The position numbers and the translations under genes were made by a program. From NCBI GenBank assembly GCA_965112735.1, contig OZ218957.1, positions 1,922,001 to 1,986,000 of the forward strand: a DNA stretch of 64,000 nt. Direction: 5' to 3'. Below are positions 27,001 to 58,360 of this stretch, one piece after another; the first letter of the stretch is position 1; every line of letters begins with the position of its first letter. The DNA comes from Phaeosaccion multiseriatum (lineage: Eukaryota > Protista > Ochrophyta, other classes). A model generated the notes under the pieces. The model did not search any database. It saw nothing but the letters and a program-made list of their open reading frames with translations, and was not told where the DNA came from.

Positions 27001-30000
27001 AACGTTGGTTGAGAGGGGCGAAGTCTTGCTGCAGCTGGATGGACAGCATAGCAAGAAGCGTTCAGCGGTGGCGTTCTTGTTCACAGGACAGGGATCGCAG
27101 TACGTGGGCATGGGCAGGGAGCTGTACGAGAAGGAGGGCGTGTTCCGCGAGTGCGTGCAGCGGTGCAGCAGGCTGCTCATGGAGCGGAGCTGGCTGGACA
27201 AGTCTGTGGTGGAGCTCATGTACCCAGCGGTCGCTGAGGACGGGAAGGAGGAGGAGGAGACTGCACAAGCGATGCTGAAGGAGACACGCTACTGCCAGCC
27301 GTGCCTGTTTGTGCTGGAGTACGCCCTGTGTGAGCTGTGGAAGTCGGAGGGAGTAGAGCCGTCCATGGTGATGGGCCACAGCCTGGGCGAGGTAGTGGCG
27401 GCGTGCGTAGCCGGCGTCATGTCGCTGGAGGACGGGCTGATGCTGTCCGCCAAGAGAGGAGCCGCCATGCAGGCCTGCCCCGAGGGCGAGGGAGTGATGT
27501 TCGCAGTGAGGGCAGGCAAGGAGGCGACTTTGGCAATCATCGACGCTGCGGGGGGGGCAGGGGAGATGGTGCTGGCGTCGTCGAATGGACCGAGCGCGAG
27601 CGTGATCTCTGGAGCTCGCAGCGCTGTGGACAAGGTGGTGGAGAAGCTCACGGCAAATGGGGTGGGCTGCAAGGCCCTGGAGGTGTCGCACGCCTTCCAC
27701 TCTCCTCTGATGGAGCCCGCTGTACGTTCGCTGGAGGAGGTTCTGAGGCAGGTGTCATTCAGCGCCCCACGCATTCCCCTGGTGTCCAACGTGACGGGTG
27801 AGGTGGTGAGAGAGGAGGAGGTGACGCAGACGACGTATTGGGTGCAACACATGCTGTCGCCGGTGCTGTTCGCAGAAGGCATCCACACGCTGGTGGAGCA
27901 CTGGATGGGAGACGGGAGGGGGGCTGACCTGAGCATCGTTGAGGTGGGCCCCAACCCTGTGCTGAGCGGCATGGGAGCCAAGTGCGAGCGTCGCGAGGGG
28001 CTGGCGTGGATCTCTTCCCTCACGCGCGGGAAGAGCTGTGAGGATTCTTTTGGAGCGGCTCTGAGCACAATACAGCAGCAAAAGTGTAAGGGCAAGGAGC
28101 ACATCCTGTTCCCAACGCGCAAAGCCTTTCCTTGGTACACAGCGCGAGCCACAGCAGCACCTCAGAAGTGGAGTGAAGCGGAGCAGGGCCCGCTCTATGT
28201 TGTTGAGTGGGAGGCGGTGGAGGTGCCCACGGCCTCGCAGCAGGCGTTGCTGACCGGCAGCCTTCCGTGGCTCGTCGTGATTCCCGATGCAGCCGAAGAG
28301 CAGGACGCATGGAGCAACCACAGAGCGTTGGAAGCTATCGGAAGCGCGGCGACAGCAAGTGGCGTAGAGGTGCACATGGTGGAGGCAGTCGGTTCAGACG
28401 CGCAGCCACGTGGGGCCCATCTCTTCTACTTGACGTCAGGAACGGGCTCTGCTACCGATGGGGCAATCCACTTTGTGCAAACTGTACAGAGCTTAGACGG
28501 GGACGCGGCAGGGATGCCGATCACGGTGGTGACAACGGGAGTGTACAGCGGTGCTGGTTGGCAGGGCAGCTGGGCAGTGGGACTGGTGAGAAGTGTACGC
28601 CTGGAGCGGGGCGACCTCGATGTGAACCACATCGACCTTGAGTATGCCATGTATCCACAGTCTGAGGATGCACGACCTAGAGCAGAGAAGATGGAAGCCC
28701 AAGCTATCTCCCAGGCTGTGACGCTGGCTGCAGGAGCCCGCGACGGCGGCCGAGGCTTGGACCTACTGGTTCGAGGGTGTGAGATCCTCGCTCCGAGGCT
28801 GGTGCCCAGCACACTCCATCTGACATCGGCAGGAGGGGATCGCTTCACGTACAGGGAGGATGGGACCTACCTGATCAGCGGTGGTCTGGGGGGGCTGGGT
28901 CTGGCGACGGCGAATCACTTGGTCTCCCAGGGCGCTCGACACCTGCTCCTTCTATCTCGAAGTGGCCGGGCGGCGGAGGAAGTTTCAGAGCTGTGGCAGG
29001 CCCTGCAGAGCATGGAGAGTGTCACCGCTGTGGCCGTGGCCTGCGATGTGTCCGATATGGGCCAGCTTCGAGATGCTGTAGCAACGGCCTTGGTGGGGCT
29101 GCCTCATGTTCGGGGTGTGATTCACGCAGCGGGTGTGACTGGCGCAAAGGGAATGTTGTCGAGCGAGACGGAAGAGAACGTGCGAAATGTCTTTGCCGCC
29201 AAGATCCAGGCAGGTTGGAATCTCCACGTGCTGTGCCTTGAGTGGGCGGCGAGCGGCAGGGAGGAAGTCGACTTCTTCGCCTCGTACTCATCGACCTCCG
29301 CTTTGCTTGGCTTGTCCAATCAGAGCGCCTATGCCGGGGCCAATGCTGCTTTGGACGGGCTGATGCGGTACCGCCGACGCCAGCTTGGCCTTCCTGCTTC
29401 CAACATTCAGTGGGGCCCATGGGGCGACGTGGGTATGGCGGTGCGGCTCGGAATGGTGTCCAAAGCTGCAGACATGGCCGGAGTGGGCCTGATCTCATCG
29501 GCGCTGGGAATGAAGGCTCTGTATACCGTCCTTGCAAGTCACGCGCAAGCCAACGTGCAGGAGGTGGCCGTCATGCCGGCCATGAGATGGGGCAGGTTTC
29601 GAGCGAGTTTGGACCCGGTGCACAGCGATTTCCTCGGGCAATTGACGGACCGCGGAGAAAGTGGTGAGGCGGCAAAGGGCCTCAACGTCAACGCCGAGGT
29701 GCGGGAGGAGCTCCTGCACTTGCCGGAGTCAGCACGGCGGGAGAGGATCGAGCAAGTCCTGACGGACATTATGGTCGAGTGCGTTGGCGAGGACTTGACC
29801 ATTACATCTACGATGCCTTTGATGGAAGCCGGACTCGATTCCATGGCGTCCGTGGAGTTTGGCAAGCGAATCGAGGCCTGGTGTGGTGTCACCATGTCGA
29901 GCGGCGCCTTCTTTACGTATCCATCAGTGTCTGCAATGGCTTCATGGATCGAAGAGGAAGTGCTGGGAGCGGACTCGGGGCCGCTGAGTGAGCCTGATGA

Positions 30001-33000
30001 TCAAGCAACAGGTCTTTCGCACTACTCCTTGGATGCTGACGCCCCCGCGGCTTACCAGCAGGAGCACATGTACCTTTCGGACGTAGCACTGCGGACGACT
30101 GCCCCTGGAGGGCAGAGCGCGTACAATCTCCCAGTGGTGCTGCCGCTGCCAGTCTCGCTGATCTCCGGACGAACATCCGCTGAAATTGTGGACATGCTAG
30201 CACAAGTGTTGGGCAGCATAGTGGAGCGACATGACGTGCTCCGGACGGCGCTTGAGTGGACAAAGCAGGGCTCTCTGAGGCAGGTACAGCTTGGAACTAC
30301 GGCAGCCGCGGTGGTGTCAGCTTGTCTCTCTTCTGCCGTGGCCAGCAGTGTTGGGGCGGCTCGGAGCCTGATCGAGGCCGATATCGCTCGTACATTCGAT
30401 TTGGAGCGGAGCCAGCCTCTATGGCGTACGTTGGTCGTACACCTCCCGCAGCAGAGCGGAGTGGAGGAGCAGTATGCTGCGGTATCTACTTTCCATCATT
30501 GCATCTTTGATGGTGTATCCTACTTGCTCTTCCAGGGCGAGTTCAAGGCCACATGCGCAGCTGCCATGGCGGGGAGAGGCATTGCACAAGACCTACCGGC
30601 TCTGCCCTTCAGCTTCGCGGACTACTCCAGGTGGCAACGAGCTCGGCTGGACGGCGAAGGTCGTATTGAGGAGCTGCTTGAGTACTGGCAGGGTCAACTG
30701 GCTGGTACCAGTCCACTGCAGCTGCCTCTCCATCAGCGACATGCCCAAAAGGGCCTCATTGGAGAAATGGTGCATGAAGATATCAGTGTGGGAGGAAGTG
30801 GGAGGGTGAACTTGGTGCTACCCAATGCAGTGGTGGTCAAGTTGAGTAAACTGTGTGCGGATAGCTCCGCCACGCTGTTTGTGGGGCTCATGGGCGCGTT
30901 CCAAGTGCTGCTGGCTCGTGTGTGCGGAGCGGAGGATGTGGTGGTGGGCACTGCTCACTTCGGAAGAGACTTGGCGCAAGGCTTGGAGGGTGTGCTGGGA
31001 TGCTTCGTCAACACCCTCGCGTTCCGTCTGGGCCTGGGAGGAAGCCCCAGCTTTCGGGAGGTGCTGCTTCGCGTACAGGTCGCGTATCTGGGTGCCATGA
31101 AGCACGCCGAGGCGCCATTCCACAAGGTGGTGGAGCGGGCCCAGCTGGGCAGAGATGAGCGTGGCAAGGCGCTACAGGCATTCTTTGTACTGCAGGAGGC
31201 GGGTTTGGATATTTTGAAGGATCAGTACGCGGGTGTGGACACTTGGAAGAATAATACGACTGACATCGAGCTATGCCTTGTGCGCAGCACGGACAGTGCG
31301 TCGGACATGCACGGCAGCCTGTGCTTCAATACGGCGGTGCTCGACAAGGCCACAGTGGAGACCCTGGGGCGGAGCTTTGTGGCGCTGCTGGAGAGTGCAG
31401 TGGGCAGGCCGGGCGAGAGCGTGTGGAAGCTGAGTCTCTTGGCACACGAGGACCGTGTGAAGGTGGTGGAGACATTGAGCGGCGCTGCACTGGTGGCGGG
31501 GGGTGCAAATGGAGATGAGGAGGGAGGTGCAGAGGAAGTATCGCCACCACCGCCCCTCCTGCATGCAGCTTTCGAAGAGATGGCCTCTCGCAGTCCGGAG
31601 CAAGAAGCCTTGCACGAGTATGAGACAGGTCGGGTGATGAGCTACGGGGAGCTGAATGGGCATGCGAATGCGGTGGCATGCATGCTGCAGGGGAGGGGCG
31701 TGGGGCCGGAGTGCCTGGTGGGGGTGCTGATTGCTGGGGACTGCGTGGAGGCGGTTGTGGCAGTGCTGGGCGTGCTCAAGGCCGGGGCGGCGTACGTGCC
31801 CCTGGATCCCGAGCATCCCGACGATAGGCTGTCGATGATCGCACAAGACGCCGGGCTGAACGTCGTTCTGACAGCAGCATCTGGGGCGGACCATGTGGAA
31901 CAAGGCCCACCCTCAGGCGGTAGGTCGGCTCGCACCGTCGGAGACGCGAGCTGTGTGGATGTGAGGACCATGATGCAGCTCGAGGGGGCTGCTACGACAG
32001 TCTCTGAGGTGGAGTGCAAGGCCGTCGACATCAATGTGGCGTATGTGATATACACGTCTGGCAGCACCGGGCGACCGAAGGGTGTGGTGGTCGAGCATAG
32101 AAACGCGGCCAGCTTCATGGCGACTCTATACGAAACGATGCTCGGCACCATAGACCCTTCGTCACGGGTTCTGCAGAGCAGCGCTTTGACTTTCGACATG
32201 TCGGTGACGTTGATCTTCGGGGCTCTGTCATGCGGGGCGACGCTGTGCCTGGTGCAAAGGCTCTCCATGTTGAGCGAGCTGCCAGAGGTTGTGCGCTCGC
32301 TTGGGGTATCGATCTTGATGTGCACTCCGTCACTACTGTCCTTGCTCCCACAGCCTCATGGTGGAGAAGTGGCTTTCCCGAGTCTTCGGTCGATCGCGCT
32401 TGGGGGAGAGGCCTTACGTCAAGAGCAGGTCGAGTACTGGAAACACCGAGTGCGACTGTGGAACGGATTTGGACCCACCGAGACGACGATGGTAGTTACC
32501 TGCCACGAGTACACACCTTCTGCCGTGCCGAGCGCGTCCGTCATCGGCAAGCCCCAAGCCGGCGTGCAAGTGTATGTGGTGGACAAGCGTCTGCAGCTGG
32601 TGCCTCAGGGCGTGGAGGGCGAGCTGTGCATTGGGGGGAGACAGCTGGCGCGTGGGTACTTGAATCGCCCAGAGCTCACGTCGAAGGCCTTCATCCCCGC
32701 GCCCTTCCTGACGGATCAGCGCAGAGTGTATCGTACGGTAAGTCGAAAAGGTTGCCCATGGGTGTGCGGCTTTGTGTAGTGTACATTTGGCTTGCTTTTG
32801 GCATGCCATGCCGTGAAAAGCAGAGACCGCAGGGGGAGGTAGTTCTCTCTGTTGCCCTGTGGCACTGTTCTCCCCCCTCATCTGACGCGTCTCAAACTTA
32901 ACACGTTCTGACAGGGTGACTTGGTGCGGCAGCTGGCAGACGGATCGCTGGTGTTTAGGGGTCGCCGAGACTCTCAAGTGAAGGTGCGCGGCCATCGCAT

Positions 33001-36000
33001 TGAGCTGGGCGAGGTGGAGGCTGCCCTGCTCCATCAAGAGGGTGTGAGGAGCGCTGTGGCAGCCGTGGACAGAGAGCGTGAGACGGTTGTGGCGGCTCTG
33101 ACACCTTCTAGTGCCGAAGTTGAGATGGTTCTGCAAGGAGTGAGCAAGCTGCTACCGGCATACATGGTGCCGAGCAAGGCTGTGGCCATGGATGCTCTAC
33201 CGATGACGAGCAGCGGGAAGCAAGATGTGAAAGAGGTTCTCAGAGCCATTCGAGTGGCACATGACCATGGCCCTGGCCGGCAGCGAAGCCTAGGCGTCAG
33301 CGATGACGCACCTATGGACGCACCTATGGACGACACCACCCGTCAAGTGCTCGACATTATGCGAGAGGCCGTTGGGCGACCGGATCTGCGAGCCAGCGAC
33401 GACTGGTTCGCCGAGGGAGGTACTTCGCTTAACGCTGCAAGTGTCACTGCGCGCATCCGCGCAGAGGTGCCAGGCCTCGAGGTGAGTAGGATGGAGGGCG
33501 GTCTTTCTGCTGTGGTCGGTACTTCCAAATGGTTTGCTAATATAGATGTTGACTGTCGGATATCCTTACTCGTTGCTGTACTCAGGCGCTCCAGGTGGCG
33601 GAGATGTTCCAGACACCCACCGCGAGGGGTGTGTCTCGCTTGTGTGCGAGCAGGGAGGACACGCTTCCTGGCATGATGGTGATATCGCCTGTAGGCGACG
33701 ATTGTGAGGCTCCAGCGTCGTACCAACAGGAGCACATGCTGCTGTCGGACCTGGCGCTGCGAGCGGGCGACCCAGACGGGAGGGCGCGATACAATGTGCC
33801 CATGCTTCTACCCGTGCCCAGCTCCGAGTCGGAGAGAGAGCCCAGCGAGGTTGTGGACGGCTTGTCCCGTGCCCTGTGCGCCGTGGTGGAGCGTCACGAT
33901 GTTCTACGATTGGCGCTAGGCTGGTCACCGGAGGGGACGCTGCAGCAGGTGCGGCTGCAGACCACAGCAGCGGAGGTTGTGGCGTCAGTGCTCCTGTCCG
34001 CCGAGGCGAACAGCATCGAAGAGGCCGAGAGCGTACTATTGGCAGAGGCGGGGCGTCTGTTTGACTTGGACGAGGAAAGGCCACTCTGGCGCAGCACCAT
34101 CGTCACGCTTGCACCGCCCCAGGATGGTGAGAAGGAGCACCCGCTGGGGCCGCAAGCGGTGCTGTGTGTCTTCCACCACTCCATCATGGATGGGTGGTCG
34201 TCCAAGCTGTTCTCGCGCGAGCTGTTGGTCATGTGGGGGGCTGTCGTGTCTGGCCGAGAGGCGACGAAGGCGCTAGCAGCTCTGCCGTTTGGGTATGCAG
34301 ACTACTCCCGGTGGCAGCGGTCGCGACTGGACGGGGACAACGGCCTGGCCCTGGAGCAGCTGTTGGAGTACTGGCAGGGGCAGCTAACGGGGGCGTCTTC
34401 ACTGAACCTGCCCCTCGACCGACCGCACGGTGCTTTCGGCCCGCACCTGACGGAGACTGTAGGTCAAGATGGGATTGTGGGGGTGAACGCCGGGAGTGTC
34501 GCTGTAGTTCTGCCGGCTTCGCTGATAGTGAAGCTGAGCAATTTATGCTCGAGCAGCTCCGCCACGCTGTTTGTGGGGCTCATGGGCGCGTTCCAAGTGC
34601 TGCTGGCTCGTGTGTGCGGAGCGGAGGATGTGGTGGTGGGCACTGCGCACTTCGGAAGAGACGTGGCGCAAGGCTTGGAGGGCGTGCTGGGATGCTTCGT
34701 CAACACCCTCGCGTTCCGTCTGGGCCTGGGAGGAAGCCCCAGCTTTCGGGAGGTGCTGCTTCGCGTACAGGTCGCGTATCTGGGTGCCATGAAGCACGCC
34801 GAGGCACCGTTCCACAAGGTGGTGGAGCGGGCCCAGCTGGGCACACAGAGTGGTGGCAAGGCGCTGCAAGCCTTCTTTGTACTGCAGGAGGGAGATGCCA
34901 GCGCCGTGGAGGAGGAGGCCCTGCTGTCATCTGGAGCACGCCACAAGATCATGACGGAGGAGGCTGGAGAGCAGCAGGCCAACCACTTTAGCAAGACGGA
35001 CATCGAGCTATGCCTTGTGCGCAGCACGGACAGTGCATCGGACATGCACGGCAGCCTGTGCTTCAATACGGCGGTGCTCGACCAGGCCACAGTGGAGACC
35101 CTGGGGCGGAGCTTTGTGGCGCTGCTGGAGAGTGCAGTGGGCAGGCCGGGCGAGAGCGTGTGGAAGCTGAGTCTCTTGGCACACGAGGACCGTGTGAAGG
35201 TGGTGGAGACGTTGAGCGGCGCTGCACTGGTGGCGGGGGATGCAAATGGAGATGAGGAGGGAGGTGCAGAGGAAGCATCACCACCACCGCCCCTCCTGCA
35301 CGCGGCTTTCGAAGGGATGGCCTCTCGCAGTCCGGAGCAGGAAGCCCTGCACGAGTATGAGACGGGTCGGGTGATGAGCTACGGGGAGCTGAATGGGCAT
35401 GCGAATGCGGTGGCATGCATGCTGCAGGGGAGGGGCGTGGGGCCGGAGTGCCTGGTGGGGGTGCTGATTGCTGGGGACTGCGTGGAGGCGGTTGTGGCAG
35501 TGCTGGGCGTGCTCAAGGCCGGGGCGGCGTACGTGCCCCTGGATCCCGAGCATCCCGACGATAGGCTGTCGATGATCGCAGAAGACGCCGGGCTGAGCGT
35601 CGTTCTGACAGCAGCATCTGGGGCGGACCATGTGGAACAAGGCCTCCCCACAGGCGGTAGGTCGGCTCGCACCGTCGGAGACGCGAGCTGTGTGGATGTA
35701 AGGACCATGATGCAGCTCGAGGGGGCTGCTACGACAGTCTCTGAGGTGGAGTGCAAGGCCGTCGACATCAATGTGGCGTATGTGATATACACGTCTGGCA
35801 GCACCGGGCGACCGAAGGGTGTGGTGGTCGAGCATAGAAACGCGGCCAGCTTCATGGCGACTCTATACGAAACGATGCTCGGCACCATAGACCCTTCGTC
35901 ACGGGTTCTGCAGAGCAGCGCTTTGACTTTCGACATGTCGGTGACGTTGATCTTCGGGGCTCTGTCATGCGGGGCGACGCTGTGCCTGGTGCAAAGGCTC

Positions 36001-39000
36001 TCCATGTTGAGCGAGCTGCCAGAGGTTGTGCGCTCGCTTGGGGTATCGATCTTGATGTGCACTCCGTCACTACTGTCCTTGCTCCCACAGCCTCATGGTG
36101 GAGAAGTGGCTTTCCCGAGTCTTCGGTCGATCGCGCTTGGGGGAGAGGCCTTACGTCAAGAGCAGGTCGAGTACTGGAAACACCGAGTGCGACTGTGGAA
36201 CGGATTTGGACCCACCGAGACGACGATGGTAGTTACCTGCCACGAGTACACACCTTCTGCCGTGCCGAGCGCGTCCGTCATCGGCAAGCCCCAAGCCGGC
36301 GTGCAAGTGTATGTGGTGGACAAGCGTCTGCAGCTGGTGCCTCAGGGCGTGGAGGGCGAGCTGTGCATTGGGGGGAGACAGCTGGCGCGTGGGTACTTGA
36401 ATCGCCCAGAGCTCACGTCGAAGGCCTTCATCCCCGCGCCCTTCCTGACGGATCAGCGCAGAGTGTATCGTACGGTAAGTCGAAAAGGTTGCCCATGGGT
36501 GTGCGGCTTTGTGTAGTGTACATTTGGCTTGCTTTTGGCATGCCATGCCGTGAAAAGCAGAGACCGCAGGGGGAGGTAGTTCTCTCTGTTGCCCTGTGGC
36601 ACTGTTCTCCCCCCTCATCTGACGCGTCTCAAACTTAACACGTTCTGACAGGGTGACTTGGTGCGGCAGCTGGCAGACGGATCGCTGGTGTTTAGGGGTC
36701 GCCGAGACTCTCAAGTGAAGGTGCGCGGCCATCGCATTGAGCTGGGCGAGGTGGAGGCTGCGCTGCTCCATCAAGAGGGGGTGGTGAGCGCTGTGGCAGC
36801 CGTGGACAGAGAGCGCAAGACGGTTGTGGCGGCTTTGACACCTTCTAGTGCCGAAGTTGAGATGGTTCTGCAAGGAGTGAGCAAGCTGCTACCGGCATAC
36901 ATGGTGCCGAGCAAGGCTGTGGCCATGGATGCTCTACCGATGACGAGCAGCGGGAAGCGAGACGTGAAAGAGGTTCTCAGAGCCATTCGAGCGGCACATG
37001 ACCATGGCCCTGGCAGGCAGGGTAGCGTAGGCGCCAGCGATGACGCACCTATGGACGACACCACCCGTCAAGTGCTCGACATTATGCGAGAGGCCGTTGG
37101 GCGACCGGATCTGCGAGCCAGCGACGACTGGTTCGCCGAGGGAGGTACTTCGCTTAACGCTGCAAGTGTCACTGCGCGCATCCGCGCAGAGGTGCCAGGC
37201 CTCGAGGTGAGTAGGATGGAGGGCGGTCTTTCTGCTGTGGTCGGTACTTCCAAATGGTTTGCTAATATAGATGTTGACTGTCGGATATCCTTACTCGTTG
37301 CTGTACTCAGGCGCTCCAGGTGGCGGAGATGTTCCAGACACCCACCGCGAGGGGTGTGTCTCGCTTGTGTGCGAGCAGGGAGGACACGCTTCCTGGCATG
37401 ATGGTGATATCGCCTGTAGGCGACGATTGTGAGGCTCCAGCGTCGTACCAACAGGAGCACATGCTGCTGTCGGACCTGGCGCTGCGAGCGGGCGACCCAG
37501 ACGGGCGGGCGCGATACAATGTGCCCATGCTTCTACCCGTGCCCAGCTCCGAGTCGGAGAGAGAGCCCAGCGAGGTTGTGGACGGCTTGTCCCGTGCCCT
37601 CTCCGCCATGGTGCAGCGTCACGATGTTCTGCGATTGGCGCTAGGCTGGTCACCGGAGGGGACGCTGCAGCAGGTGCGGCTGCAGACCACAGCAGCGGAG
37701 GTTGTGGCGTCAGTGCTCCTGTCCGCCGAGGCGAACAGCATCGAAGAGGCCGAGAGCGTACTATTGGCAGAGGCGGGGCGTCTGTTTGACTTCGACGAGG
37801 AAAGGCCACTCTGGCGCAGCACCATCGTCACGCTTGCACCGGCCCAGGATGGTGAGAAGGAGCACCCGCTGGGGCAGCAAGCTGTGCTGTGTGTCTTCCA
37901 CCACTCCGTCATGGATGGGTGGTCGTCCAAGCTGTTCTCGCGCGAGCTGTTGGTCATGTGGGGGGCTGTCGTGTCTGGCCGAGAGGCGACGAAGGCGCTA
38001 GCGGCTCTGCCGTTTGGGTATGCAGACTACTCCCGGTGGCAGCGGTCGCGACTGGACGGGGACAACGGCCTGGCCCTGGAGCAGCTGTTGGAGTACTGGC
38101 AGGGGCAGCTAACGGGGGCGTCTTCACTGAACCTGCCCCTCGACCGACCGCTCGGTGCTTTCGGCCCGCACCTGACGGAGACTGTAGGTCAAGACGGGAG
38201 TGTGGGGGGGGGCGCCGGGAGCGTCGCTATTGTTCTGCCGGCTTCCCTGATAGTGAAGCTGAGCAACCTATGCTCGAGCAGCTCCGTCACGCTGTTTGTG
38301 GGGCTCATGGGCGCGTTCCAAGTGCTGCTGGCTCGTGTGTGCGGAGCGGAGGATGTGGTGGTGGGCACTGCTCACTTCGGAAGAGACGTGGCGCAAGGCT
38401 TGGAGGGCGTGCTGGGATGCTTCGTCAACACCCTCGCGTTCCGTCTGGGCCTGGGAGGAAGCCCCAGCTTTCGGGAGGTGCTGCTTCGCGTACAGGTCGT
38501 GTATCTGGGTGCCATGAAGCACGCCGAGGCACCGTTCCACAAGGTGGTGGAGCGGGCCCAGCTGGGCACACAGAGTGGTGGCAAGGCGCTGCAAGCCTTC
38601 TTTGTACTGCAGGAGGGAGATGCCAGCGCCGTGGAGGAGGAGGCCCTGCTGTCATCTGGAGCACGCCACAAGATCATGACGGAGGAGGCTGGAGAGCAGC
38701 AGGCCAACCACTTTAGCAAGACGGACATCGAGCTATGCCTTGTGCGCAGCACGGACAGTGCATCGGACATGCACGGCAGCCTGTGCTTCAATACGGCGGT
38801 GCTCGACCAGGCCACAGTGGAGACCCTGGGGCGGAGCTTTGTGGCGCTGCTGGAGAGTGCAGTGGGCAGGCCGGGCGAGAGCGTGTGGAAGCTGAGTCTC
38901 TTGGCACACGAGGACCGTGTGAAGGTGGTGGAGACGTTGAGCGGCGCTGCACTGGTGGCGGGGGATGCAAATGGAGATGAGGAGGGAGGTGCAGAGGAAG

Positions 39001-42000
39001 CATCACCACCACCGCCCCTCCTGCATGCGGCTTTCGAAGAGATGGCCTCTCGCAGTCCGGAGCAAGAAGCCCTGCACGAGTATGAGACAGGTCGAGTGAT
39101 GAGCTACGGGGAGCTGAATGGGCATGCGAATGCGGTGGCATGCATGCTGCAGGGGAGGGGCGTGGGGCCGGAGTGCCTGGTGGGGGTGCTGATTGCTGGG
39201 GACTGCGTGGAGGCGGTTGTGGCAGTGCTGGGCGTGCTCAAGGCCGGGGCGGCGTACGTGCCCCTGGATCCCGAGCATCCCGACGATAGGCTGTCGATGA
39301 TCGCACAAGACGCCGGGCTGAACGTCGTTCTGACAGCAGCATCTGGGGCGGACCATGAGGAACAAGGCCCACCCTCAGGCGGTAGGTCGGCTCGCACCGT
39401 CGGAGACGCGAGCTGTGTGGATGTAAGGACCATGATGCAGCTCGAGGGGGCTGCTACGACAGTCTCTGAGGTGGAGTGCAAGGCCGTCGACATCAATGTG
39501 GCGTATGTGATATACACGTCTGGCAGCACCGGGCGACCGAAGGGTGTGGTGGTCGAGCATAGAAACGCGGCCAGCTTCATGGCGACTCTCTACGAAACGA
39601 TGCTCGGCACTATAGACCCTTCGTCACGGGTTCTGCAGAGCAGCGCTTTGACTTTCGACATGTCGGTGACGTTGATCTTCGGGGCTCTGTCATGCGGGGC
39701 GACGCTGTGCCTGGTGCAAAGGCTCTCCATGTTGAGCGAGCTGCCAGAGGTTGTGCGCTCGCTTGGGGTATCGATCTTGATGTGCACTCCGTCACTACTG
39801 TCCTTGCTCCCACAGCCTCATGGTGGAGAAGTGGCTTTCCCGAGTCTTCGGTCCATCGCGCTTGGGGGAGAGGCCTTACGTCAAGAGCAGGTCGAGTACT
39901 GGAAACACCGAGTGCGACTGTGGAACGGATTTGGACCCACCGAGACGACGATGGTAGTTACCTGCCACGAGTACACACCTTCTGCCGTGCCGAGCGCGTC
40001 CGTCATCGGCAAGCCCCAAGCCGGCGTGCAAGTGTATGTGGTGGACAAGCGTCTGCAGCTGGTGCCTCAGGGCGTGGAGGGCGAGCTGTGCATTGGGGGG
40101 AGACAGCTGGCGCGTGGGTACTTGAATCACCCAGAGCTCACGTCGAAGGCCTTCATCCCCGCGCCCTTCTTGGCGGACCAGCGCAGAGTGTATCGTACGG
40201 TAAGTGGAAAAGGTTGCCCATGGGTGTGCGGCTTTGTGTAGTGTACATTTGGCTTGCTTTTGGCACCCCATGCAGTGAAAAGCAGAGAGCTCAGGGGGGG
40301 GGGGGTGGAGGTAGTTCTATCTGTTGCCTTGTGGCTCTGTTCTCATCTGACGCGTCTCAAACTTAACACCTTCTGACAGGGTGACTTGGTGCGGCAACTG
40401 GCAGACGGATCGCTGGTGTTTAGGGGTCGGCGAGACTCTCAAGTGAAGGTGCGCGGCCATCGCATTGAGCTGGGCGAGGTGGAGGCTGCGCTGCTCCATC
40501 AAGAGGGTGTGAGGAGTGCTGTGGCAGCCGTGGACAGAGAGCGTGAGACGGTTGTGGCGGCTCTGACACCTTCTAGTGCCGAAGTTGAGATGGTGCTGCA
40601 AGGAGTGAGTAAGCTGCTACCGGCATACATGGTGCCGAGCAAGGCTGTGGCCATGGATGCTCTACCGATGACGAGCAGCGGGAAGCGAGACGTGAAAGAG
40701 GTGCTGAGAATGATCAAGGTGGAAGCGAAGGGGAAGGAGTCCGGTGTACAATCGTCCGACGGCGACGAGGCGTTAGGCGACACTGCCCGCCAAGTGCTGG
40801 GCATCCTTAGGCAGGCCACGGAGCAGCCTCACTTGCAGGCCAGTGACGACCTGTTCGCAGAGGGAGGCACATCGTTGAGCGCGGCTCAGGCGGTTTCGCG
40901 TATCCGGGCAGAGGTGCCCGGCTTCGAGGTGAGTGACTTTGAGCACAAAGCATTTGTCATCTTGTGTCCCGCTCTTGTCGCTGACCCTGTTGTGTCTGTG
41001 TGACTCCTGCAGGCTCTGACAGTAATGCAAATCTTCCAGAACCGAACCGCTGTGGCACTTTCAGTGCTTGGTGCCGCGGAGGAGGGCCGAGGCAGAGGAG
41101 ACAGCGAAGCCCGACTGAAGGACGAGGAGCGCGATTTGTCAGTCGGTGGAGAAGGGGAAGCGATGAAAGCGCACCGGAGGCTCAGCACTGGCAAGCAAGT
41201 GGTGCTGCAGATTCTGAGTTGGCTACTTGTTGTTGCTGTGCTCAGCTGCGGGTTTTCTCCCAGCTTCGTTGGCGTGTACTTGCTACGTAGAGCAGGGCGC
41301 GGCAATACGACGATTCTTTCTTGGCTACCACTCCTCGTCGTCGTGTCAGTAAGCTGTGTCCTTGCCCTGATTGCAGTGGTGAAGTGGACTGTGCTTGGCC
41401 GCATGCGACCGGGGCGATGGTCCGTGAGGAGCTCGTACTACTGGCGGTGGTATGCTGTGCAGAATGTGCTGAAACTTGCCACACTGCTGATTTCTGTCCT
41501 CCGTGGTACCTTCGCCTTGCGGGTGTGGAACCGCCTGCTGGGGGCACGAATCAGTGGAAGCGCACGCTTAGAGAGCTGGTTGCTGCACGAGCATGACTTG
41601 ATCGAGATTGGAGAAGGGGCCGTGATCGAGTACGGAGCCATCATTCGCCCGTCTGTAATTACTCGGAATGGCATGCTCCATGTTCATCGCGTGAGGATCG
41701 GGAAGGGAGCAAAGGTGGGAATACTGTCCAACGTGTGTCCGTCTCCCTGGGAGGGGCGGCAGACACAGGAGGGGGAGGAGGGCCTGAATGAGGAGCCAAA
41801 GGACTTGGTCATCGGCGAGGGGATGGAGCTCGGTCCGTACGCGTCGCTCGGCCATTCGTCACTCTCTGGCCCGCTGGCAGAGGTCCAGCGCGAGCAGGGG
41901 CTGCGGCGGATAAGAAAAGAGCTTTGTGCCTTGGTCCTGCTTTCAGTGACCAACTTGGGGTCGTACCTGCTGCCCCTCTGGATACTCGTGCTTGCCGGTG

Positions 42001-43637
42001 GGGGCGATGACGACGGCGCGGGGGAGAGTGTCCCCATCTTCGCTCGTGCATTGGCATTCCCCGTGCTGCTGTTGACTGTAAGCCTGCTGTACATGGTGGC
42101 AGTGCTATCGCTACAGCGTGTGTTCTTGCTGCTCGGCCCCAGCGCCACGACACGGCTGTCACTCGGAGTTCTTCAGGAGAGTCCTCTCTTCAAGGTTGGC
42201 TCCCTTCTTGTGGCACAATGTGGGCTCAACCGTGCTTTTGCTTCCGCCATGGGCGCCAGGCTGGAGCGGGGGTGCGCACTTCTTACCCTTCCTATCACTA
42301 CGATATGGGAGAAGCTCAGGATGGAGGAAAACTCCCAGATCGCGGGCTCTGTGCACCTTTTTGCTGATGCGGGTGGTCGTGGAGAGGAGGATACGCAAAG
42401 CATCACAATCGGGCGCTTCAGCATTGTTGCGAACGAAGCTGTTCTCCTAGGCGGAGCTTGCATTGGGGACGGAAGCACGGTCGCAGATCGCACCGTTGTG
42501 AGTAGAGACGACGACGTGCCGCGCAACTCTTCTGTAGTGGGCGCCCCTCGGCCGTTTGTATTGCCGAACCCAGTGAGTGCTGCTGCTGAGAAGGATAGCG
42601 TCGATGCAGCAGCCAGTCTTCCTGTTCCGTCGAGGATGCACAATGCGCTGTGTGGGCTTGCGACTGTGGTGCTGTTCCTCGGCGTATGGTGTCCGGGGGT
42701 GCTGATCAGCGCGTCGGCATCTGACCTGCTTCTTCGCAACGGCCATGTGCATGGGGCTGCCGCCTTCTGTCCCTTCGTCCTTCCGGAAGTGGTGGCGAGG
42801 GATACTCTGAGCGAGAGCCATACTGGAGTGTTCTTTCTTGTGTTGGGGAGCTTCGTCTTTCAAGTTCTCATGGGCTTGGCGGGCGCTTGCTCAGCCATAA
42901 TTTTCCATCGCCTTCTCGCCACATCCTTGCATGCCAGAGAGGGGCAGCCTCCCATAGCGCTCGATTCGTCTTCGTTGGATTTATACCGCTTGGGCAGCAT
43001 GGGCCCCACCTTCATAGAAGCTCTCTGCATCAATTACTTCGCGGGCGGGCCGGTGTACGCGGCGTGGCTGCGGCTGCTGGGGGCACGTGTTGGCAAGGAC
43101 ACATCTTTATGGCTCAGGCCTACTGATGCGCATCTTCTCGTCATTGGAGACGAAGCGGTGATGTTGCAAGACTCCACAGTCTTCGCGCACACCATCGAAG
43201 GCACGGGAGGGTTCGTCTTCAAGACTGTGCAAGTCGGGGAGAACGCGTGGCTCGGAGCAAGGGCTCACTTGCAGCCTGGATGCCGCGTTGAAGCAGGAGC
43301 TAACGTTGGTGACTTGAGCATGGCCATGAGAGGTGAAAGTGTCACCAATTCAAAGCGTGGAGACGTGGTGTGGGTGGGCATACCGCTGAGAAAGCACATC
43401 TTGTCCTCCCGAGCGCGCGCTGCGCCGCGTCACGGAACGGAGCTGGACAGCGGCGGAGCCCCGGCAGAAGAGCGAACCCTTCGCAACAAGGGCAGTGGAG
43501 AGTCGAGGAGACATGTGGTTCGAGAGAGAAGTAGCCCTCGCCGAGGAGTAGCGGCTTTCCGGTGGCAGAGTGGCAGTGGCGTCGATGAGCATCAGCCTGA
43601 CGAGACAAAGACTGACGATGGATTCGAGGTAGTTTGA
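1..43637 (+). CDS. Giant hybrid cis-AT type I PKS / NRPS megasynthase (5'-partial), 17 exons, ~13,780 aa within window; one apparent 1-nt frameshift at ~12601
   Basis: The long + ORFs join through GT-AG introns at 905-1066, 5334-5456, 5532-5701, 8636-8764, 9131-9239, 9792-9947, 10522-10669, 13712-13860, 19963-20120, 26220-26376, 32738-32914, 33482-33585, 36475-36651, 37207-37310, 40200-40379 and 40929-41012. Splicing restores motifs such as SPDG/W|RCKTFD (KS), HGK|VLGGG (ECH), GRLE|VGTES (HMGS) and YRT|GDL (A7). Stop TGA at 43635-43637. The ORF begins inside an ACP, so the gene starts upstream of the window. Confidence 0.9.
3..205 (+). other. ACP domain (end of an upstream PKS module)
   Basis: [19 protein letters not shown], GxDS phosphopantetheine motif. 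Confidence 0.9.
270..5295 (+). other. PKS module A, part 1: KS1-AT1-DH1-ER1
   Basis: KS motifs DTACSSS/HGTGT/NIGHLE (intron 905-1066); AT motifs GQGSQ, GHSLG, HAFHS (malonyl-type); [18 protein letters not shown]; [12 protein letters not shown] and [10 protein letters not shown]. Confidence 0.92.
5457..6350 (+). other. Degenerate ketoreductase (KR0) of module A
   Basis: KR scaffold present ([25 protein letters not shown]). The NADPH motif reads GGASRMG, and the catalytic GQANYAAAN reads KQADDVGAH (Tyr->Asp at 6149-6151, Asn->His). Includes mini-exon 5457-5531. Confidence 0.8.
6630..7520 (+). repeat. Three tandem ACP domains (339-nt tandem triplication)
   Basis: [10 protein letters not shown](A/T)[12 protein letters not shown] occurs three times; DS codons at 6722, 7061 and 7400 give an exact 339-nt period. 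Confidence 0.93.
7670..9330 (+). other. Two tandem enoyl-CoA hydratase/crotonase domains (ECH1 dehydratase-like, ECH2 decarboxylase-like)
   Basis: ECH1: [32 protein letters not shown]2: [30 protein letters not shown]|[18 protein letters not shown] (no catalytic Glu). Introns 8636-8764 and 9131-9239. Confidence 0.85.
9565..11095 (+). other. Embedded HMG-CoA synthase domain (eukaryotic/mevalonate type)
   Basis: [24 protein letters not shown]|VGTES (catalytic Glu), [17 protein letters not shown] (catalytic Cys), [12 protein letters not shown] (catalytic His), YSYGSG. Introns 9792-9947 and 10522-10669. Confidence 0.92.
11230..13010 (+). other. Atypical KS2 (Cys-His-Asn) followed directly by an ACP, no AT: probable non-elongating module
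   Basis: DMACSSS (Cys 11782), EAHGLGS instead of HGTGT, NMGNLEG instead of NIGHLEG (Asn 12373). [16 protein letters not shown] at ~12790-13010. The frame discontinuity lies between KS2 and the ACP. Confidence 0.8.
13090..19270 (+). other. PKS module B: KS3-AT2-DH2-ER2-KR2-ACP (fully reducing)
   Basis: DTGCSSS/HGTGT/NVGHLE; GHSLG/HAFHS; [11 protein letters not shown] with HPAVLD; IHAASGGVG; GGLGALG, AGVLDD (B-type), GQANYAAAN; GLDSL. Confidence 0.93.
19345..25525 (+). other. PKS module C: KS4-AT3-DH3-ER3-KR3-ACP (fully reducing; duplicate of module B)
   Basis: Same motif set as module B, offset ~6.25 kb (KS introns at 13712, 19963, 26220). Confidence 0.93.
25605..29970 (+). other. PKS module D: KS5-AT4-KR4-ACP (beta-hydroxy-forming)
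   Basis: DTACSSS/HGTGT/NIGHLE; GHSLG/HAFHS; no DH or ER; KR GGLGGLG and NQSAYAGAN, lacks LDD; ACP GLDSM. Confidence 0.9.
30040..33640 (+). other. NRPS module 1: C-A-T
   Basis: C HHCIFDG; A motifs [43 protein letters not shown]|[30 protein letters not shown]; T FAEGGTSL. Confidence 0.93.
33700..37365 (+). other. NRPS module 2: C-A-T
   Basis: C HHSIMDG; A and T nearly identical to module 1, offset 3737 nt. Confidence 0.93.
37425..41065 (+). other. NRPS module 3: C-A-T
   Basis: C HHSVMDG; A nearly identical to modules 1-2 (offset 3725 nt); T more diverged ([11 protein letters not shown]). Confidence 0.93.
41190..43390 (+). other. Terminal membrane domain: three units of TM helix pair plus left-handed beta-helix (Pls / NRPS_term_dom-like)
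   Basis: Pairs of hydrophobic segments followed by [44 protein letters not shown]; AMGARL...[27 protein letters not shown]; [12 protein letters not shown]...[10 protein letters not shown]...SMAMRGESV...WVGIP. This is the pattern of the C-terminal region of epsilon-poly-L-lysine synthetase-like NRPSs (recognised by eye). Confidence 0.8.
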
Positions 43638-43745
43638 TCCCTCTAGAATTGTAGCGACAAAGAAGAAGAATAATATATTATTTGTAAAAGGAAATTGAAC
43701 TACGAGTTGTAAAAGGAAATTGAAAATTTAAAGAAGACAAAAATG
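43638..43745 (+). promoter_or_regulatory. AT-rich putative 3' UTR / polyadenylation region of the megasynthase with an 18-nt direct repeat
   Basis: Abrupt AT-rich stretch after the stop codon; TTGTAAAAGGAAATTGAA at 43682-43699 and 43707-43724. Confidence 0.4.
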
Positions 43746-43987
43746 GGGAAAGGGCTCAGGCCGTCAGGTGCCATCCACCGATGGAGGAAGAGGAAGTTAA
43801 CTTAGCTCAATAAGCGATGGTACAAAGTACAATGAATAGGGGACAATGGGTGTTTATGGTGGCCTCGTTCATCCCCCGGAGCATGGACAATGGCAGGTCA
43901 TGTGTGCCACCGATCGGAGAAGGCGTAACATACAAACTCCCACCCAACTCGCACGCACGCACGCCACACACGCACGCACACAACTCC

Positions 43988-44887
43988 TCAGTGCGAGAGT
44001 AGCTCTTCTTTCCATGACATATCCCCCTGCATGAAGCGAGACACATGTTTGCTGGAGAGCGGCCTGAGGTTTGTGGTATCTCCCACGGCCCTGTCCGCCG
44101 CCCTCCGTTGTCCTCCTCTTCTTCTTCTTCCTCCTCCTCCTCCTCCTCCTCCTCCTCCTCCTCCTCCTCCTCCTTCCCCTCCTCCTCCTCCTCCAGCATG
44201 TACCTTATGCCCTGGAGTGAAGGGCGTGCTCTGCTGCATTCGAGCGCACATCTGATGGGGAAAAGCACTTGGGTGGAGAGGAAGGCGAATGTTCAGCGCA
44301 TCACCTCGGCCCGCTCCAATTAAGAAGAGTGCTTTCTGTCGCTTCTTCTCTGTCCGAGGTCCTGCCGCTACCCTCTCCTTTCTTCCACCACTCGCATCAG
44401 CAGGACAGCCGCAGGACAGCGGGCCTCCGCCCCTCATCGTTGATCAAGATTGCAAAGTTGTGCTGGCATCGAACTTGAGCATCAGAGGCACTCGATGTGC
44501 TGGACCCCCCCTCCCCCCCCCCGGTGCTATCACACGCGCTGTCTCACTGTCATGCCAGACGCCACGTTCGGCAGCTAGTGCGACTTCTCTCACACAAGGG
44601 AGAGGGTGCATGGGGAATAGCTCACATGCTCCTTCCTTCCGCCCATCCTCTTGCCTGTCTCGTGTCGTCAAGTAGGGCGGCGACGAGCTGGCTCTGCCCA
44701 GCTCAGCTTAGCACGCCAACGATGCCCCTTCCCTCATCTTTGTTGAGGACTGTGCTATGTGCGGCTGCGGCTGTCTTGTCTCGGCCTCGGCTGTGCGTCT
44801 TTCTCTCTCTCTCCCTCTCCGGCGTTTGAAGTTCTGTTGCCCATTCGAGGCAAACAAGAGGAGGCTTGACCTTCTCCCCTCCTGCCT

Positions 44888-44923
<36 letters not shown>

Positions 44924-45743
44924 CTCTCTCTCTCTCTCTCTCTCTCTGTCTGTCCGTCTGTCTCTGTCTGTCTGTCTCTTTCGTTAATGCCTCTGAAGGA
45001 TTCACCCCAAGTCTTCCGAAGCCTGCACACAAGCTCCGTTGGAACGCGGGGAGAGGCAGGTCCGGTTTGGCTCTTCCTTTATTTGGCGCTCCCTTCCACG
45101 CCGCTATAGCTACGACGGCGCCTTGCGAACCCTTAATCCTGCTGCAGCCTTCAGTCTCCTTCTCCGCGAAGGGACAAAAGGAGCCCTAGGCTTAGGAATC
45201 TCTCCTAGGGCAGTGGCATAGCTGCGTCCCTTGGCTTGGACACGGCTAGCGATGGACTCTGGCTTTCTGAGCTCCCCCAACTCTCGCGCAATCTCTACGC
45301 TGGTCTGTCACGGCACGACACGGGGAGAGTCAAGTCGATGAGAAAGGGAGAAGGAGAAGGTGGAGGAGGAGGAGCACGGTAGCGGTATTAACTCCCTTAT
45401 CCACAAGACTTGTACGAACCTTCTGCAATTCCCGCCCTTGTGAATTTGTCTCTTCCTCCCGTGTCACGTACAGCTTCCACGACCGCCACGCCAGTGCCAT
45501 CATCAGAACAGAGCCCAGGGATCCAAGCACACTCTTCAATAGCCCGCGACTGACAAACCCCAGCGTCAGGAGGAGAAGCATTTGCCACGGCGTGAGGGAG
45601 CCTTGTGGTTGTGCTTCTGCAGCTGGCAAGGAATCAGGTTTTTCCCCGCTGTGCCGCTGCTTCGCCTGGCCAAGCGCAGGAAGGGGGAAAGGAGGGTCCA
45701 GGAATCGGCTGCCTCCTGGACGAAACCCGTCTTGCATCGACAT
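43988..45743 (-). CDS. Possible spliced hypothetical (membrane) protein; exon structure unresolved
   Basis: ORF 45330-45743 has two hydrophobic segments and a plausible donor (AAG|GTTCGT) near 45419; further exon-like patches lie between microsatellites. No recognisable family. Confidence 0.25.
44890..44980. repeat. (CT)n/(CTGT)n microsatellite
   Basis: Direct reading. Confidence 0.9.
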
Positions 45744-56104: not shown

Positions 56105-56978
56105 ATGGTGAACAAGAAGTGCAAGACCGAAGGGTGTAACAAGTACGGCGTGAGGAAGGGCCTCTGCCTGACGCATGGACGGGGTGAGCGAGCTTCGTGC
56201 AGTGTCGATGGCTGCGACCGGTATCCCAAACGGCAGGGCGTCTGCATTGCCCATGGGGCCAAGCTCAACCGATGTAAAACGGAGGGCTGCGATAAGCAGG
56301 TCGTGCAGGGCAAGCTCTGCCTCAAGCACGGCGCCAAAGTCAAGCAGTGTAGTAAGGAGGGCTGCGAGAAGCTGGCAAGGCAGGGGGGCGTCTGTCTGAG
56401 GCACGGCGCAAAGGTGAAGATGTGCACCATTGAGGGTTGTACCTCGCACCGCCAGAAGGGAGGCGTGTGTACCAAGCACTATTTGGAGTCCGGGGAGCCC
56501 AAGGGCAGTAGGAAGCGCCGCCGCATCATGGGGGAAGGAGGGGTAGACGGTGTGGTGGAGGGCGGGGCATCTTCCTCCGCCGCCGCCGACCCTGGGACAG
56601 CGGCATCAGCAGCAGCGATAGATGCGGTCGCAGGCTCAGCCGAGGGGGCAGCGGCAGCAGCGGCGGCAGCAGCAGCAGCAGCAGCGGTAGTAGCAGGAGG
56701 AACAGGGGCGGGACCAGGAGCGGGGGGTCAAGCAGCAGCGGTAGCGGCAGCGGCAGCAGCAGCAGCACACCAGCAAACAGCAGCAGCCGCAGCAGCGGCA
56801 GCAGCGGCGGCGGCAGGGGTAGCGCCAGGGGCAGGTGGAACATTTCCATCTGTGCCTTCTGTGGATTCTGCCTCTCTCCCCATTGTGGCCGCGGCAGCCG
56901 CCACAGCAGCCGCGAATGCCCGAGCGACGAACGCACCGCCACCCCCCCCGGCCCTTCCTTCAGTCTTCCCACCACCAC

Positions 56979-57012
<34 letters not shown>

Positions 57013-58360
57013 TCAGCCCCGGCAGGCAGCACCCAGGGTCAAGGCGATCAAGGCCGCTGTCTCCTCCCAGCCCCAGGCAATGATGCCGTCATCATCGCTG
57101 CCAGGGGTCTCCTCCGGCCCGGCAACAGGATCTCTTCCGGGCGTGTCGGCCGGCCTCACAGATGCCGGAGGGATGCCCAAGCGAGCTTCCTCCTCGACCA
57201 ACCACCCCCACCCCACGCTCCTCCAACCCAAGGGAACGGGGGGGCAGACCATCTTGCCCCGCGGTACGGGGGCGGTCGTCAATGCCGGTGTGGGCGGTAC
57301 CGGTGGCGCCTTCGCCCCCCCTCCTTCTGCTCCTGCTGCTGCTCCTGCTCCTGCCGCTGCTCCTGCCGCTGCTCCTGCTGCATCTCCTTTCGGCTCGTAC
57401 GTTAGCTCAGCGGCAGCTCACGCGACACCTGAGGCCATCTCTGCAGCTGCAGTGAAGGCCCGAGCAGCTGCGGCGGCGGCGGCGGCGGTGGCGGCGGCGG
57501 GGGCGGCAACGGCGGCAGGAGGAGGAGGGGCCACCTCTGTACCACCAACGGTTGGAGCTTCACCCCCTCCCATCGGCACGCTTCCCGTCCCCTACCCGCC
57601 CTCTTCGTCAGCGGTTGCTCCCTCCAAGCGAGCAGCGGCCGCAGCGTCGATGCGGGCGGCGATGGATGCTGTGCCAGTGGCGCCAGGAGCAGGAGGGGCA
57701 GTCAGTGGTCTCATTAGCACGGTCGATCCAGAGTCGGCAGCTTCGTCAGGCCTGGCAGTGGTGGCACCAGCACCAGCAGCACCAGAAGCAGCAGAAGCAG
57801 CGCCCCCAGCACCACCAGCACCACCAGCTTTTTCAGCAGCAAGGGACGAAGCAGGGCCACTCGCATCATCAGCAGCAGCACCACCTCCAGAGAGCGTGTC
57901 AGCGATGTCCGAAGACATGCAGTTGGCGGTCGCAGCGGCAGCGGGTGCACCCTCCTCCGCACTGAATGCTCCTCACGTGCCATCATTACCGACCATGGCT
58001 ACCTCCACGCCTGCAGCAATTCCAGCACTCCCGGTTTCCGCAGGGCAGGAGGCCGCGCAAGAAGCCACCCACCAATCTTCTTCCTCCCTGTCACTCGCCA
58101 GTGCAAGCCAAGCGGCAATGGGTGGTGCTGCTGCGTCATCATCGTCAGAGGGAAGTGGAGCACCACCACCAGCGGTAGTCACCGCCGGAGCCGGTGCGGC
58201 AGAGGCTGTGGCGCCCGTGTCTGGAGTAGTCGGGGCATCATCGGGATCATCCCCACCATTGGAAGGATCTCTGCCGTTACTCGCAATGCCGGCGATAACG
58301 CCTGCACCGGGCTCTCTTGCCACCGCGCAGTCGGTGACGGATTCCACGGGGCGAGAGTGA
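56105..58360 (+). CDS. WRKY19-like Cys/His repeat (C-x4-C-x7-8-G-x-C-x2-HG) zinc-finger protein with Ala/Pro-rich tail, intronless, 751 aa
   Basis: Five N-terminal repeats such as CKTEGCNKYGVRKGLCLTHG and CSVDGCDRYPKRQGVCIAHG, followed by a basic NLS-like RKRRR. No WRKYGQK motif, so this is not a true WRKY factor. Confidence 0.8.

Follow-up and report, generated by a model that had tools for sequence, protein, structure and literature searches.

The 64,000-nucleotide stretch of Phaeosaccion multiseriatum DNA analyzed here (contig OZ218957.1, positions 1,922,001 to 1,986,000, hereafter the window) carries on its + strand a single very large gene, split by introns and running in across the left edge, that, according to Pfam matches on its large open reading frames (ORFs), belongs to a hybrid polyketide synthase (PKS) and nonribosomal peptide synthetase (NRPS). 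Our analysis supports the view that this assembly line ends, directly after its third NRPS carrier domain (T3) and without a thioesterase (TE) or a reductase (R), in a membrane domain of the type found in the epsilon-poly-L-lysine synthetase Pls of Streptomyces albulus and the delta-poly-L-ornithine synthetase PosA of Acinetobacter baumannii, because a profile match, a whole-length fold match to PosA, six transmembrane (TM) helices and a conserved intron position all point in this direction. This terminal domain, called TERM below, is the subject of this report.

A PKS-NRPS gene with a predicted splice to its last exon

The large + strand ORFs between positions 3 and 41003 encode, in this order, ...ACP-KS-AT-DH-ER-KR-ACPx3-ECH-HMGS-KS, then ACP-KS-AT-DH-ER-KR-ACP x2, then KS-AT-KR-ACP, and finally three C-A-T modules. 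Upstream of TERM, the PKS part comprises four to five modules with at least five KS domains, in addition to the three C-A-T modules. KS, AT and ACP domains are found together with C, A and T domains in one reading direction and joined by introns, as in type I PKS-NRPS hybrid megasynthases. The 3' end of the gene is organized as follows.

37320..40199, + strand: exon with condensation domain C3 (HHSVMDG) and the N-terminal part of A3 (Pfam Condensation 1.9e-44, AMP-binding 5.1e-78), ending in the A8 motif ...VYRT
40200..40379, + strand: phase-0 GT-AG intron (GTAAGT...GACAG) splitting the A8 motif (YRT/GDL); the junction restores YRTGDL
40380..40928, + strand: exon with the A3 C-terminal subdomain and the first half of T3 (Pfam AMP-binding_C 2.9e-08, PP-binding 1.1e-04)
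40929..41012, + strand: 84-nt GT-AG intron inside T3 (GTGAGT...CAG), with an in-frame TGA inside
41013..41198, + strand: second half of T3, corresponding to the ALQVAEMFQ... starts of the homologous T1/T2 exons, and a charged linker of 42 residues with low pLDDT
41199..41381, + strand: TM hairpin 1 (TM1 63-81, TM2 105-123) by hydropathy; AlphaFold2 helices 48-93 and 98-128
41382..41912, + strand: soluble unit 1 (C1-like), beginning with KW..GR..PG (alignment A1; pLDDT >90)
41922..42107, + strand: TM hairpin 2 (TM3 304-322, TM4 347-365) by hydropathy and AlphaFold2, with a GGGDDDG loop
42108..42632, + strand: soluble unit 2 (C2-like), fold kept in the AlphaFold2 model, sequence strongly diverged in the alignment
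42651..42920, + strand: TM hairpin 3 (TM5 547-565, TM6 605-636) by hydropathy and AlphaFold2
42930..43412, + strand: soluble unit 3 (C3-like), a hexapeptide beta-helix (Pfam Hexapep 4.3e-12; alignment)
43413..43637, + strand: Arg/Ser/Gly-rich disordered tail (pLDDT <50 from residue 802) and TGA stop (43635-43637)

Since the intron at 40929-41012 contains an in-frame TGA, it must be removed; ...VPGFE is then followed by ALTVMQIFQ..., which restores a complete carrier domain T3 with its phosphopantetheine Ser (in GGTSL) encoded at 40872-40874. The frame of the last ORF (41025-43637, + strand) is open already from 41013. T1 and T2 have an intron at the identical codon position (PGLE/ALQVAEMFQ), so that all three paralogous modules have kept this splice site, and modules 1 and 2 also have the same exon start at the A8 intron of A3 (YRT/GDL). 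From the completion of T3 and from these same-position introns, it follows that, at the level of DNA, the splice at 40929-41012 is the only reading that completes T3, as the sequence-only reading had proposed when it joined T3 in frame to the last exon.

Could the TERM ORF instead be a separate gene, its fusion to T3 being an artefact of the gene model? An ATG is present at 41025 and the sequencing runs described below gave no RNA evidence for the fusion, but this ATG falls within the second half of T3, the first half of which breaks off at a GT donor located 84 nt upstream, T1 and T2 share the intron position and a homologous exon start, and an unspliced T3 would be cut short by running into a stop; we therefore rejected a separate TERM gene, which we regard as scarcely credible. 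Bacterial contamination was also ruled out, since spliceosomal introns lie within conserved motifs.

Four sequencing runs that match the window (X1-X4, one sample, kind unknown) behave as DNA, with contigs that enter the introns and no 84-nt joint. Intron and intergenic pieces in these reads are identical to the window and of equal depth (about 90-fold in X1), while the depth over exons in X1-X4 (39500-43640) is 10-100 times that of the flanking intron/intergenic DNA (43640-45210), with many variant letters. A>G and T>C are the commonest of these variants in exon reads, and loose ends continue into different variants of the introns. These observations suggest that the reads are DNA from a genome with many paralogous copies of NRPS and TERM exons.

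The three C-A-T modules themselves (29800-40709) share 97-98% DNA identity over 2.0-3.4 kb, introns included, which suggests a recent tandem duplication or concerted evolution. This similarity stops near 40709, just before T3, which is a diverged paralogue of T1 and T2. Throughout the NRPS part, phase-0 GT-AG introns are found at conserved positions in the A8 motif (YRT/GDL) and in each carrier domain (PG[LF]E/AL), with equivalents in modules 1 and 2 at about 32780-32920, 33540-33640, 36510-36640 and 37260-37330.

The last exon encodes a six-helix domain with three beta-helical units

The protein encoded by the last exon (41013-43637, + strand) matches the NCBIfam model TIGR02353 (NRPS_term_dom, the terminal domain of Pls/PosA) in three stretches (E 8.1e-42, 143.4 bits), while Pfam finds Hexapep only (45.6 bits, E 4.3e-12, above the PF00132 gathering score of 27). 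Kyte-Doolittle hydropathy reveals six hydrophobic segments in three pairs (residues 63-81/105-123, 304-322/347-365 and 547-565/605-636). An AlphaFold2 model built from a 79-sequence alignment (mean pLDDT 81, pTM 0.88) places six long helices at the hydropathy peaks and shows three beta-helical units. When this model was compared with Swiss-Prot models using Foldseek, residues 2-796 matched the terminal domain of PosA (579-1330) with an E value of 5e-25 and a TM-score of 0.68, and, among AFDB clusters, the fold recurred in a series of proteins with a carrier domain. The PDB, searched by sequence and by fold, contains no solved Pls-type terminal domain, in line with PMC10522769, where a PosA model of three left-handed beta-helix (LbH) units is described; only single LbH acetyltransferases matched single units of TERM.

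TERM thus shows the features of TIGR02353 domains, namely six TM helices in three pairs, three tandem LbH units arranged in the model as a pseudo-trimer, and a C-terminal position directly after a carrier domain. Unit 1 is the best conserved of the three (K124, W125, G129, R130, G134, R145, G177, D195 and G236 are kept). Unit 2 has lost most of the residues conserved in the family, with W382L, R411S and G491A among the replacements. Unit 3 keeps R687, G690, G694, H726 (codon 43188-43190) and E729, while D705 and H707 replace the Glu and Asp of the family. Pfam found no TE or R domain between 26 and 43.6 kb in any large + strand ORF, nor in ORFs downstream. Altogether, the three TM pairs with hexapeptide beta-helix units, on which hydropathy and AlphaFold2 agree and whose quoted motifs are present, the similarity to TIGR02353/Pls over the whole length of the PosA fold, a TM count of six where at least about four had been called for, and the lack of TE or R after T3 were all borne out.

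TERM belongs to a divergent, mostly eukaryotic group

The TIGR02353 score of TERM (143 bits) is below the curated cut-off of that model (423.1), while two controls, the bacterial P0003 and the Nematostella P0127, reached 483 and 505 bits. Searching 1.84 billion representative sequences with TERM gave 1281 matches, the best being 35% identical (E 1e-40), and these were mostly A-T-TERM proteins of about 1300 residues. In an alignment of 79 sequences, TERM keeps 49 of the 107 columns conserved at >=75%. In the corresponding tree (LG+G4), it falls into a ten-member long-branch group, apart from 69 canonical sequences, with an SH-like approximate likelihood ratio test (SH-aLRT) support of 99, and the group was found again with the same support under LG+C20 (subset of 41 rows). 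The nearest rows to the window TERM are P0006 and P0011 (SH-aLRT 88-93). The group is mostly eukaryotic and several of its members are fused to PKS or C-A-T; besides the window TERM, it includes the following sequences.

P0006: Chrysoparadoxa australica (CAM9397790.1)
P0093: Stygiella, a 4380-residue PKS ending in TERM
P0012: Phalansterium
P0048: Gymnodinium smaydae
P0060: FAAL-ACP-KS-AT-KR-TERM, on a contig that looks eukaryotic
P0011: amine oxidase-ACP-TERM, on a contig that looks eukaryotic
P0029 and P0033: a pair whose cluster members bear bacterial metagenome-assembled genome names
P0110: an ENA metagenome sequence

Six of the other members were scanned with TIGR02353 and all scored under the cut-off (166-329 bits). 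The neighborhoods of P0060 and P0011 gave no operon-type clue. Two contigs of JGI sample 3300068088 (L001 10001-18568 and L002 4143-10592), which look eukaryotic (annexin, Nramp, cNMP-binding kinase), encode unusual fusions of the divergent TERM: FAAL-ACP-KS-AT-KR-TERM and amine oxidase x2-ACP x2-TERM.

Comparing the two groups column by column, we found 31 columns common to canonical and divergent sequences, including K124, W125, G129, R130, G134, R145, G177, D195, R687 and H726. The H726 column holds His in 9 of the 10 divergent rows and in about 96% of the family. Another 49 columns, many of them charged, are >=80% conserved in canonical sequences and kept in at most four of the ten divergent rows. 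The charged columns 752 E, 776 D, 871/904/912 R and 1075 E (alignment A1) are absent from all ten. Of the canonical motif Q-T-H-L-F-E-D-R..K, divergent rows mostly keep the His only, while three of them, including the window, also keep the Glu (E729). The window TERM further differs from both groups at W382L, R411S, G491A, P613S, E705D and D707H. Judged from these comparisons, it is a divergent relative, not an equivalog, of the Pls/PosA terminal domain.

With only 49 of 107 family-conserved columns kept, TERM may alternatively have decayed as a catalyst and been retained as a membrane anchor or scaffold, the product then being freed by hydrolysis or by a separate enzyme in trans. The heavy divergence of unit 2 and the replacement of W382, R411, G491, E705 and D707, which most divergent relatives keep, would fit such a fate, as would paralog variants that look nearly neutral: among the sites listed, the paralogous copies of the TERM exon differ by 11 synonymous and 24 non-synonymous variants and by one in-frame 3-nt insertion in the linker (48 further sites lie beyond this listing), when unweighted random changes are expected to give a synonymous share of 26%. 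However, across 2.6 kb the listed variants include no frame-breaking indel or stop, all three units have a confidently predicted fold, the unit 1 motifs and H726/E729 are retained, the same fusion persists in distant eukaryotes, and the gene has no other release domain. We consider a decayed anchor unlikely.

The adenylation domains lack the signature of polycation synthetases

All three A domains in the window have the same substrate code, DMTSAGGMVK, without a Glu at position 3. In cationic homopolymer synthetases, to which Pls, PosA and the PDAP/PDAB synthetases belong, Asp1 and Glu3 of the A-domain code are conserved throughout, and the Glu binds the side-chain amine of the substrate (PMC10522769). 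The canonical A domains that we sampled conform to D-x-E... in 14 of 14 cases (DAETIGTVVK, DFETNGTVTK and similar), while Glu at position 3 was found in none of six A domains from the divergent clade. The Asp1/Glu3 pair is thus missing from the window, the A domains of which are expected, from their codes, not to select diamino acids. Two other hallmarks of polycation synthetases are missing as well: instead of a single A-T module without a condensation domain, the gene has a multimodular assembly line, and H726 and E729 are all that remains of the conserved charged residues in units 2 and 3.

These data bear on the possibility that the end of the gene works as an iterative polymerase like Pls, in which A3-T3-TERM would be reloaded repeatedly to extend a free (Xaa)n chain, giving an acyl-(Xaa)n ladder or a homopolymer capped by the polyketide. 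The A3-T3-TERM order is the same as in Pls, the mechanism of which is iterative with free acceptors, and the three identical A codes suggest a homo-oligomeric peptide tail. On the other hand, an A code without Glu at position 3 or an acidic pocket residue leaves no side-chain amine to be expected for isopeptide growth, the charged residues of all canonical polymerases are absent from TERM, its TIGR02353 score is under the curated cut-off, and the C domain ahead of A3 implies that T3 normally bears the full chain. We thus find such polymerization rather improbable, and the earlier suggestion that the product is oligomerized into a polyamide is disfavored, since TERM lacks the charged residues of polycation synthetases and the A domains lack Glu3.

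Related ends in other megasynthases

For single-module enzymes of bacteria and fungi, this domain family and the way it works have been described. Like TERM, the terminal domains of Pls and PosA come right after a carrier domain, have six TM helices in three pairs and three tandem LbH units, keep the KW..GR..PG of unit 1 and the His of unit 3, and share the same predicted overall fold (TM-score 0.68 to PosA 579-1330). Upstream, however, Pls and PosA have a single A-T module, whereas the window has a multimodular PKS and three C-A-T modules; the window gene is also eukaryotic and split by introns, its A code lacks the diamino-acid Glu, and 49 canonical columns are not conserved in its group.

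An end of the same kind as in the window is found in the Chrysoparadoxa australica protein CAM9397790.1 (P0006), which reads DH-ER-KR-ACP-C-A-T-TERM, scores 178 bits (below the TIGR02353 cut-off) and, like the window, has an A code without Glu at position 3. It differs by having one C-A-T module where the window has three, by an identity of about 22%, and by the absence of introns over 9.6 kb, its open frame running to the end of the contig (at least 3195 codons). Since this frame contains a single NRPS module, the data fit an ancestral ...ACP-C-A-T-TERM end, the C-A-T part of which was later duplicated in tandem in this genome. A word-index search of low sensitivity for long PKS-TERM proteins, using the Chrysoparadoxa TERM, gave 21 matches, almost all of them fungal or bacterial A-T-TERM proteins.

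In the alga Coccomyxa subellipsoidea C-169, seven FAS-I-like proteins have their TE replaced by an NRPS terminal domain, and relatives in land-plant acyl-protein synthetase-like proteins are noted (Blanc et al. 2012, PMC3446292). Compared by description only, these proteins resemble the window gene as a multi-copy family of eukaryotic algal type I megasynthases with a terminal domain instead of a TE, and in both architectures a carrier is followed by an NRPS terminal domain where a TE would be expected; they differ in being single-module and FAS-like, without NRPS modules. A 2026 preprint reports a large NRPS_term_dom gene family of unknown function in Symbiodiniaceae. Our searches also recovered a plant-type TERM from Eucalyptus (P0111). 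The cluster of this protein (Eucalyptus grandis and E. globulus, about 2300 aa) combines amine oxidase, A, T and TERM with a catalase-like insertion, and the Atlas lists a Streptophyta catalase/hexapeptide cluster.

The sequence-only reading had described this architecture as typical of single-module A-T enzymes and had seen in its occurrence here a candidate for an undescribed system. The first statement is contradicted by the Coccomyxa FAS-I-like proteins (PMC3446292), the Stygiella PKS-TERM, the FAAL-PKS-TERM and the Chrysoparadoxa DH-ER-KR-ACP-C-A-T-TERM. The second stands in part: a TERM replacing a TE had already been annotated, while our literature search found no multimodular PKS-NRPS with a Pls-type end beyond the Coccomyxa and Symbiodiniaceae reports, and no account of a split between polycation-type and non-cationic TERMs.

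A candidate release acyltransferase

Each TERM unit matches the folds of trimeric LbH acyltransferases (LacA, maltose and serine acetyltransferases, LpxA/LpxD) with Foldseek E values of about 1e-4 to 1e-3, including single-unit matches to SAT, MAT and GAT. These enzymes share with TERM the hexapeptide repeats and a His in the coil region; their donors are thioesters of CoA or ACP (acyl-ACP in the case of LpxA), and they usually use a His as general base. TERM differs from them in carrying its three units in one chain, interleaved with TM hairpins, and in keeping the conserved His in one unit only. In a weak alignment with LacA (E 7e-4), H726 falls within four residues of LacA His115, which we take to be the catalytic His. 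The three tandem units of Pls couple the extender on the carrier to an acceptor that diffuses freely, without the growing chain ever being covalently held (PMC9205021).

By analogy with these systems, we propose that TERM, a divergent member of the Pls/PosA superfamily, is a membrane-embedded release acyltransferase for a non-cationic acceptor, a reading to which we give a probability of roughly 55%. Six membrane helices would carry the three fused LbH units, packed as a pseudo-trimer, on the membrane face where T3 lies. As to topology, chemistry and acceptor, we infer that TERM stands in for the TE and that, as in Pls, the phosphopantetheine thioester of T3 would be attacked by an untethered nucleophile. 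T3 would present the completed branched hydroxyacyl-(Xaa)3 chain as donor, and an amine or hydroxyl, either free or resident in the membrane, or possibly a group belonging to the chain, would serve as acceptor, with H726 of unit 3 as the likely general base. Because the acidic pocket residues are missing and the A domains are not expected to select diamino acids, one release event per chain would take place rather than a polylysine-like polymerization. Release onto a free nucleophile at the membrane is, in our view, the best account of the available data.

If the nucleophile was an internal one, such as the 3-hydroxyl, TERM would act as a cyclase and deliver a macrolactone or macrolactam into the membrane. 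The last PKS module (KS-AT-KR-ACP) would indeed leave a beta-hydroxyl, and the acidic acceptor pocket of polycation synthetases is missing from TERM. The chemistry of Pls is intermolecular, however, and we know of no LbH enzyme that cyclizes its product, so that cyclization appears very unlikely.

Several points weigh against the release acyltransferase that we favor. The TIGR02353 score of TERM is far below the family cut-off (143 versus 423 bits), and catalysis could be impaired, since unit 2 and the E-x-D motif in unit 3 show changes at residues that the other divergent members conserve. The ten divergent rows are all long branches, so that their grouping may be partly artefactual. The sequencing runs searched for RNA support of the splice gave none. 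Finally, the 11:24 ratio of synonymous to non-synonymous variants is near the random expectation and gives no clear sign of purifying selection, which leaves it ambiguous.

Other features of the window

Within the PKS part, a beta-branching set is encoded in cis at 5672-12657 (ACP x3, ECH and the C-terminal domain of an HMG-CoA synthase), followed by a KS without its own AT. On the 3' side of the TGA stop, the 43.7-45 kb region contains low-complexity GAG/CTC runs (translating as poly-E or poly-S) and (GA)n/(CT)n repeats at 43800-45050, a stretch that is probably 3' untranslated region or intergenic DNA. Further downstream, a 751-residue ORF at 56105-58360 (+ strand) encodes four WRKY19-type zinc-finger repeats (PF24906, E 8.7e-23); Pfam matched none of the remaining large ORFs downstream in the window.

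Implications for chain release in eukaryotic megasynthases

How the giant PKS and NRPS assembly lines of algae and protists release their products is largely unknown, and many of them have no TE. The window offers a clean case of a Pls-type membrane domain at the release position, together with a mostly eukaryotic sister group of the polycation-synthetase domain in which the core is kept, charged residues are lost, and the domain is paired with non-cationic A domains or PKS carriers. The gain is tempered by the fact that the fusion itself was annotated before, in Coccomyxa (2012) and in the NRPS_term_dom genes of Symbiodiniaceae.

More speculatively, and against the odds as we see them, the divergent TERMs could form a distinct off-loading class that links finished polyketide or lipopeptide chains to an acceptor in the membrane or outside the cell (a lipid head group, a polyamine or a wall polymer), or that threads them through the six-helix bundle. 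If this was true, chain release, membrane targeting and export would be united in one domain, which would explain giant algal and protist megasynthases without TE or R. A group of release-and-export acyltransferases would represent a new termination logic for eukaryotic megasynthases; it would guide product prediction for algal toxin-like lipopeptides, and acceptor adducts would provide a handle for finding their products.

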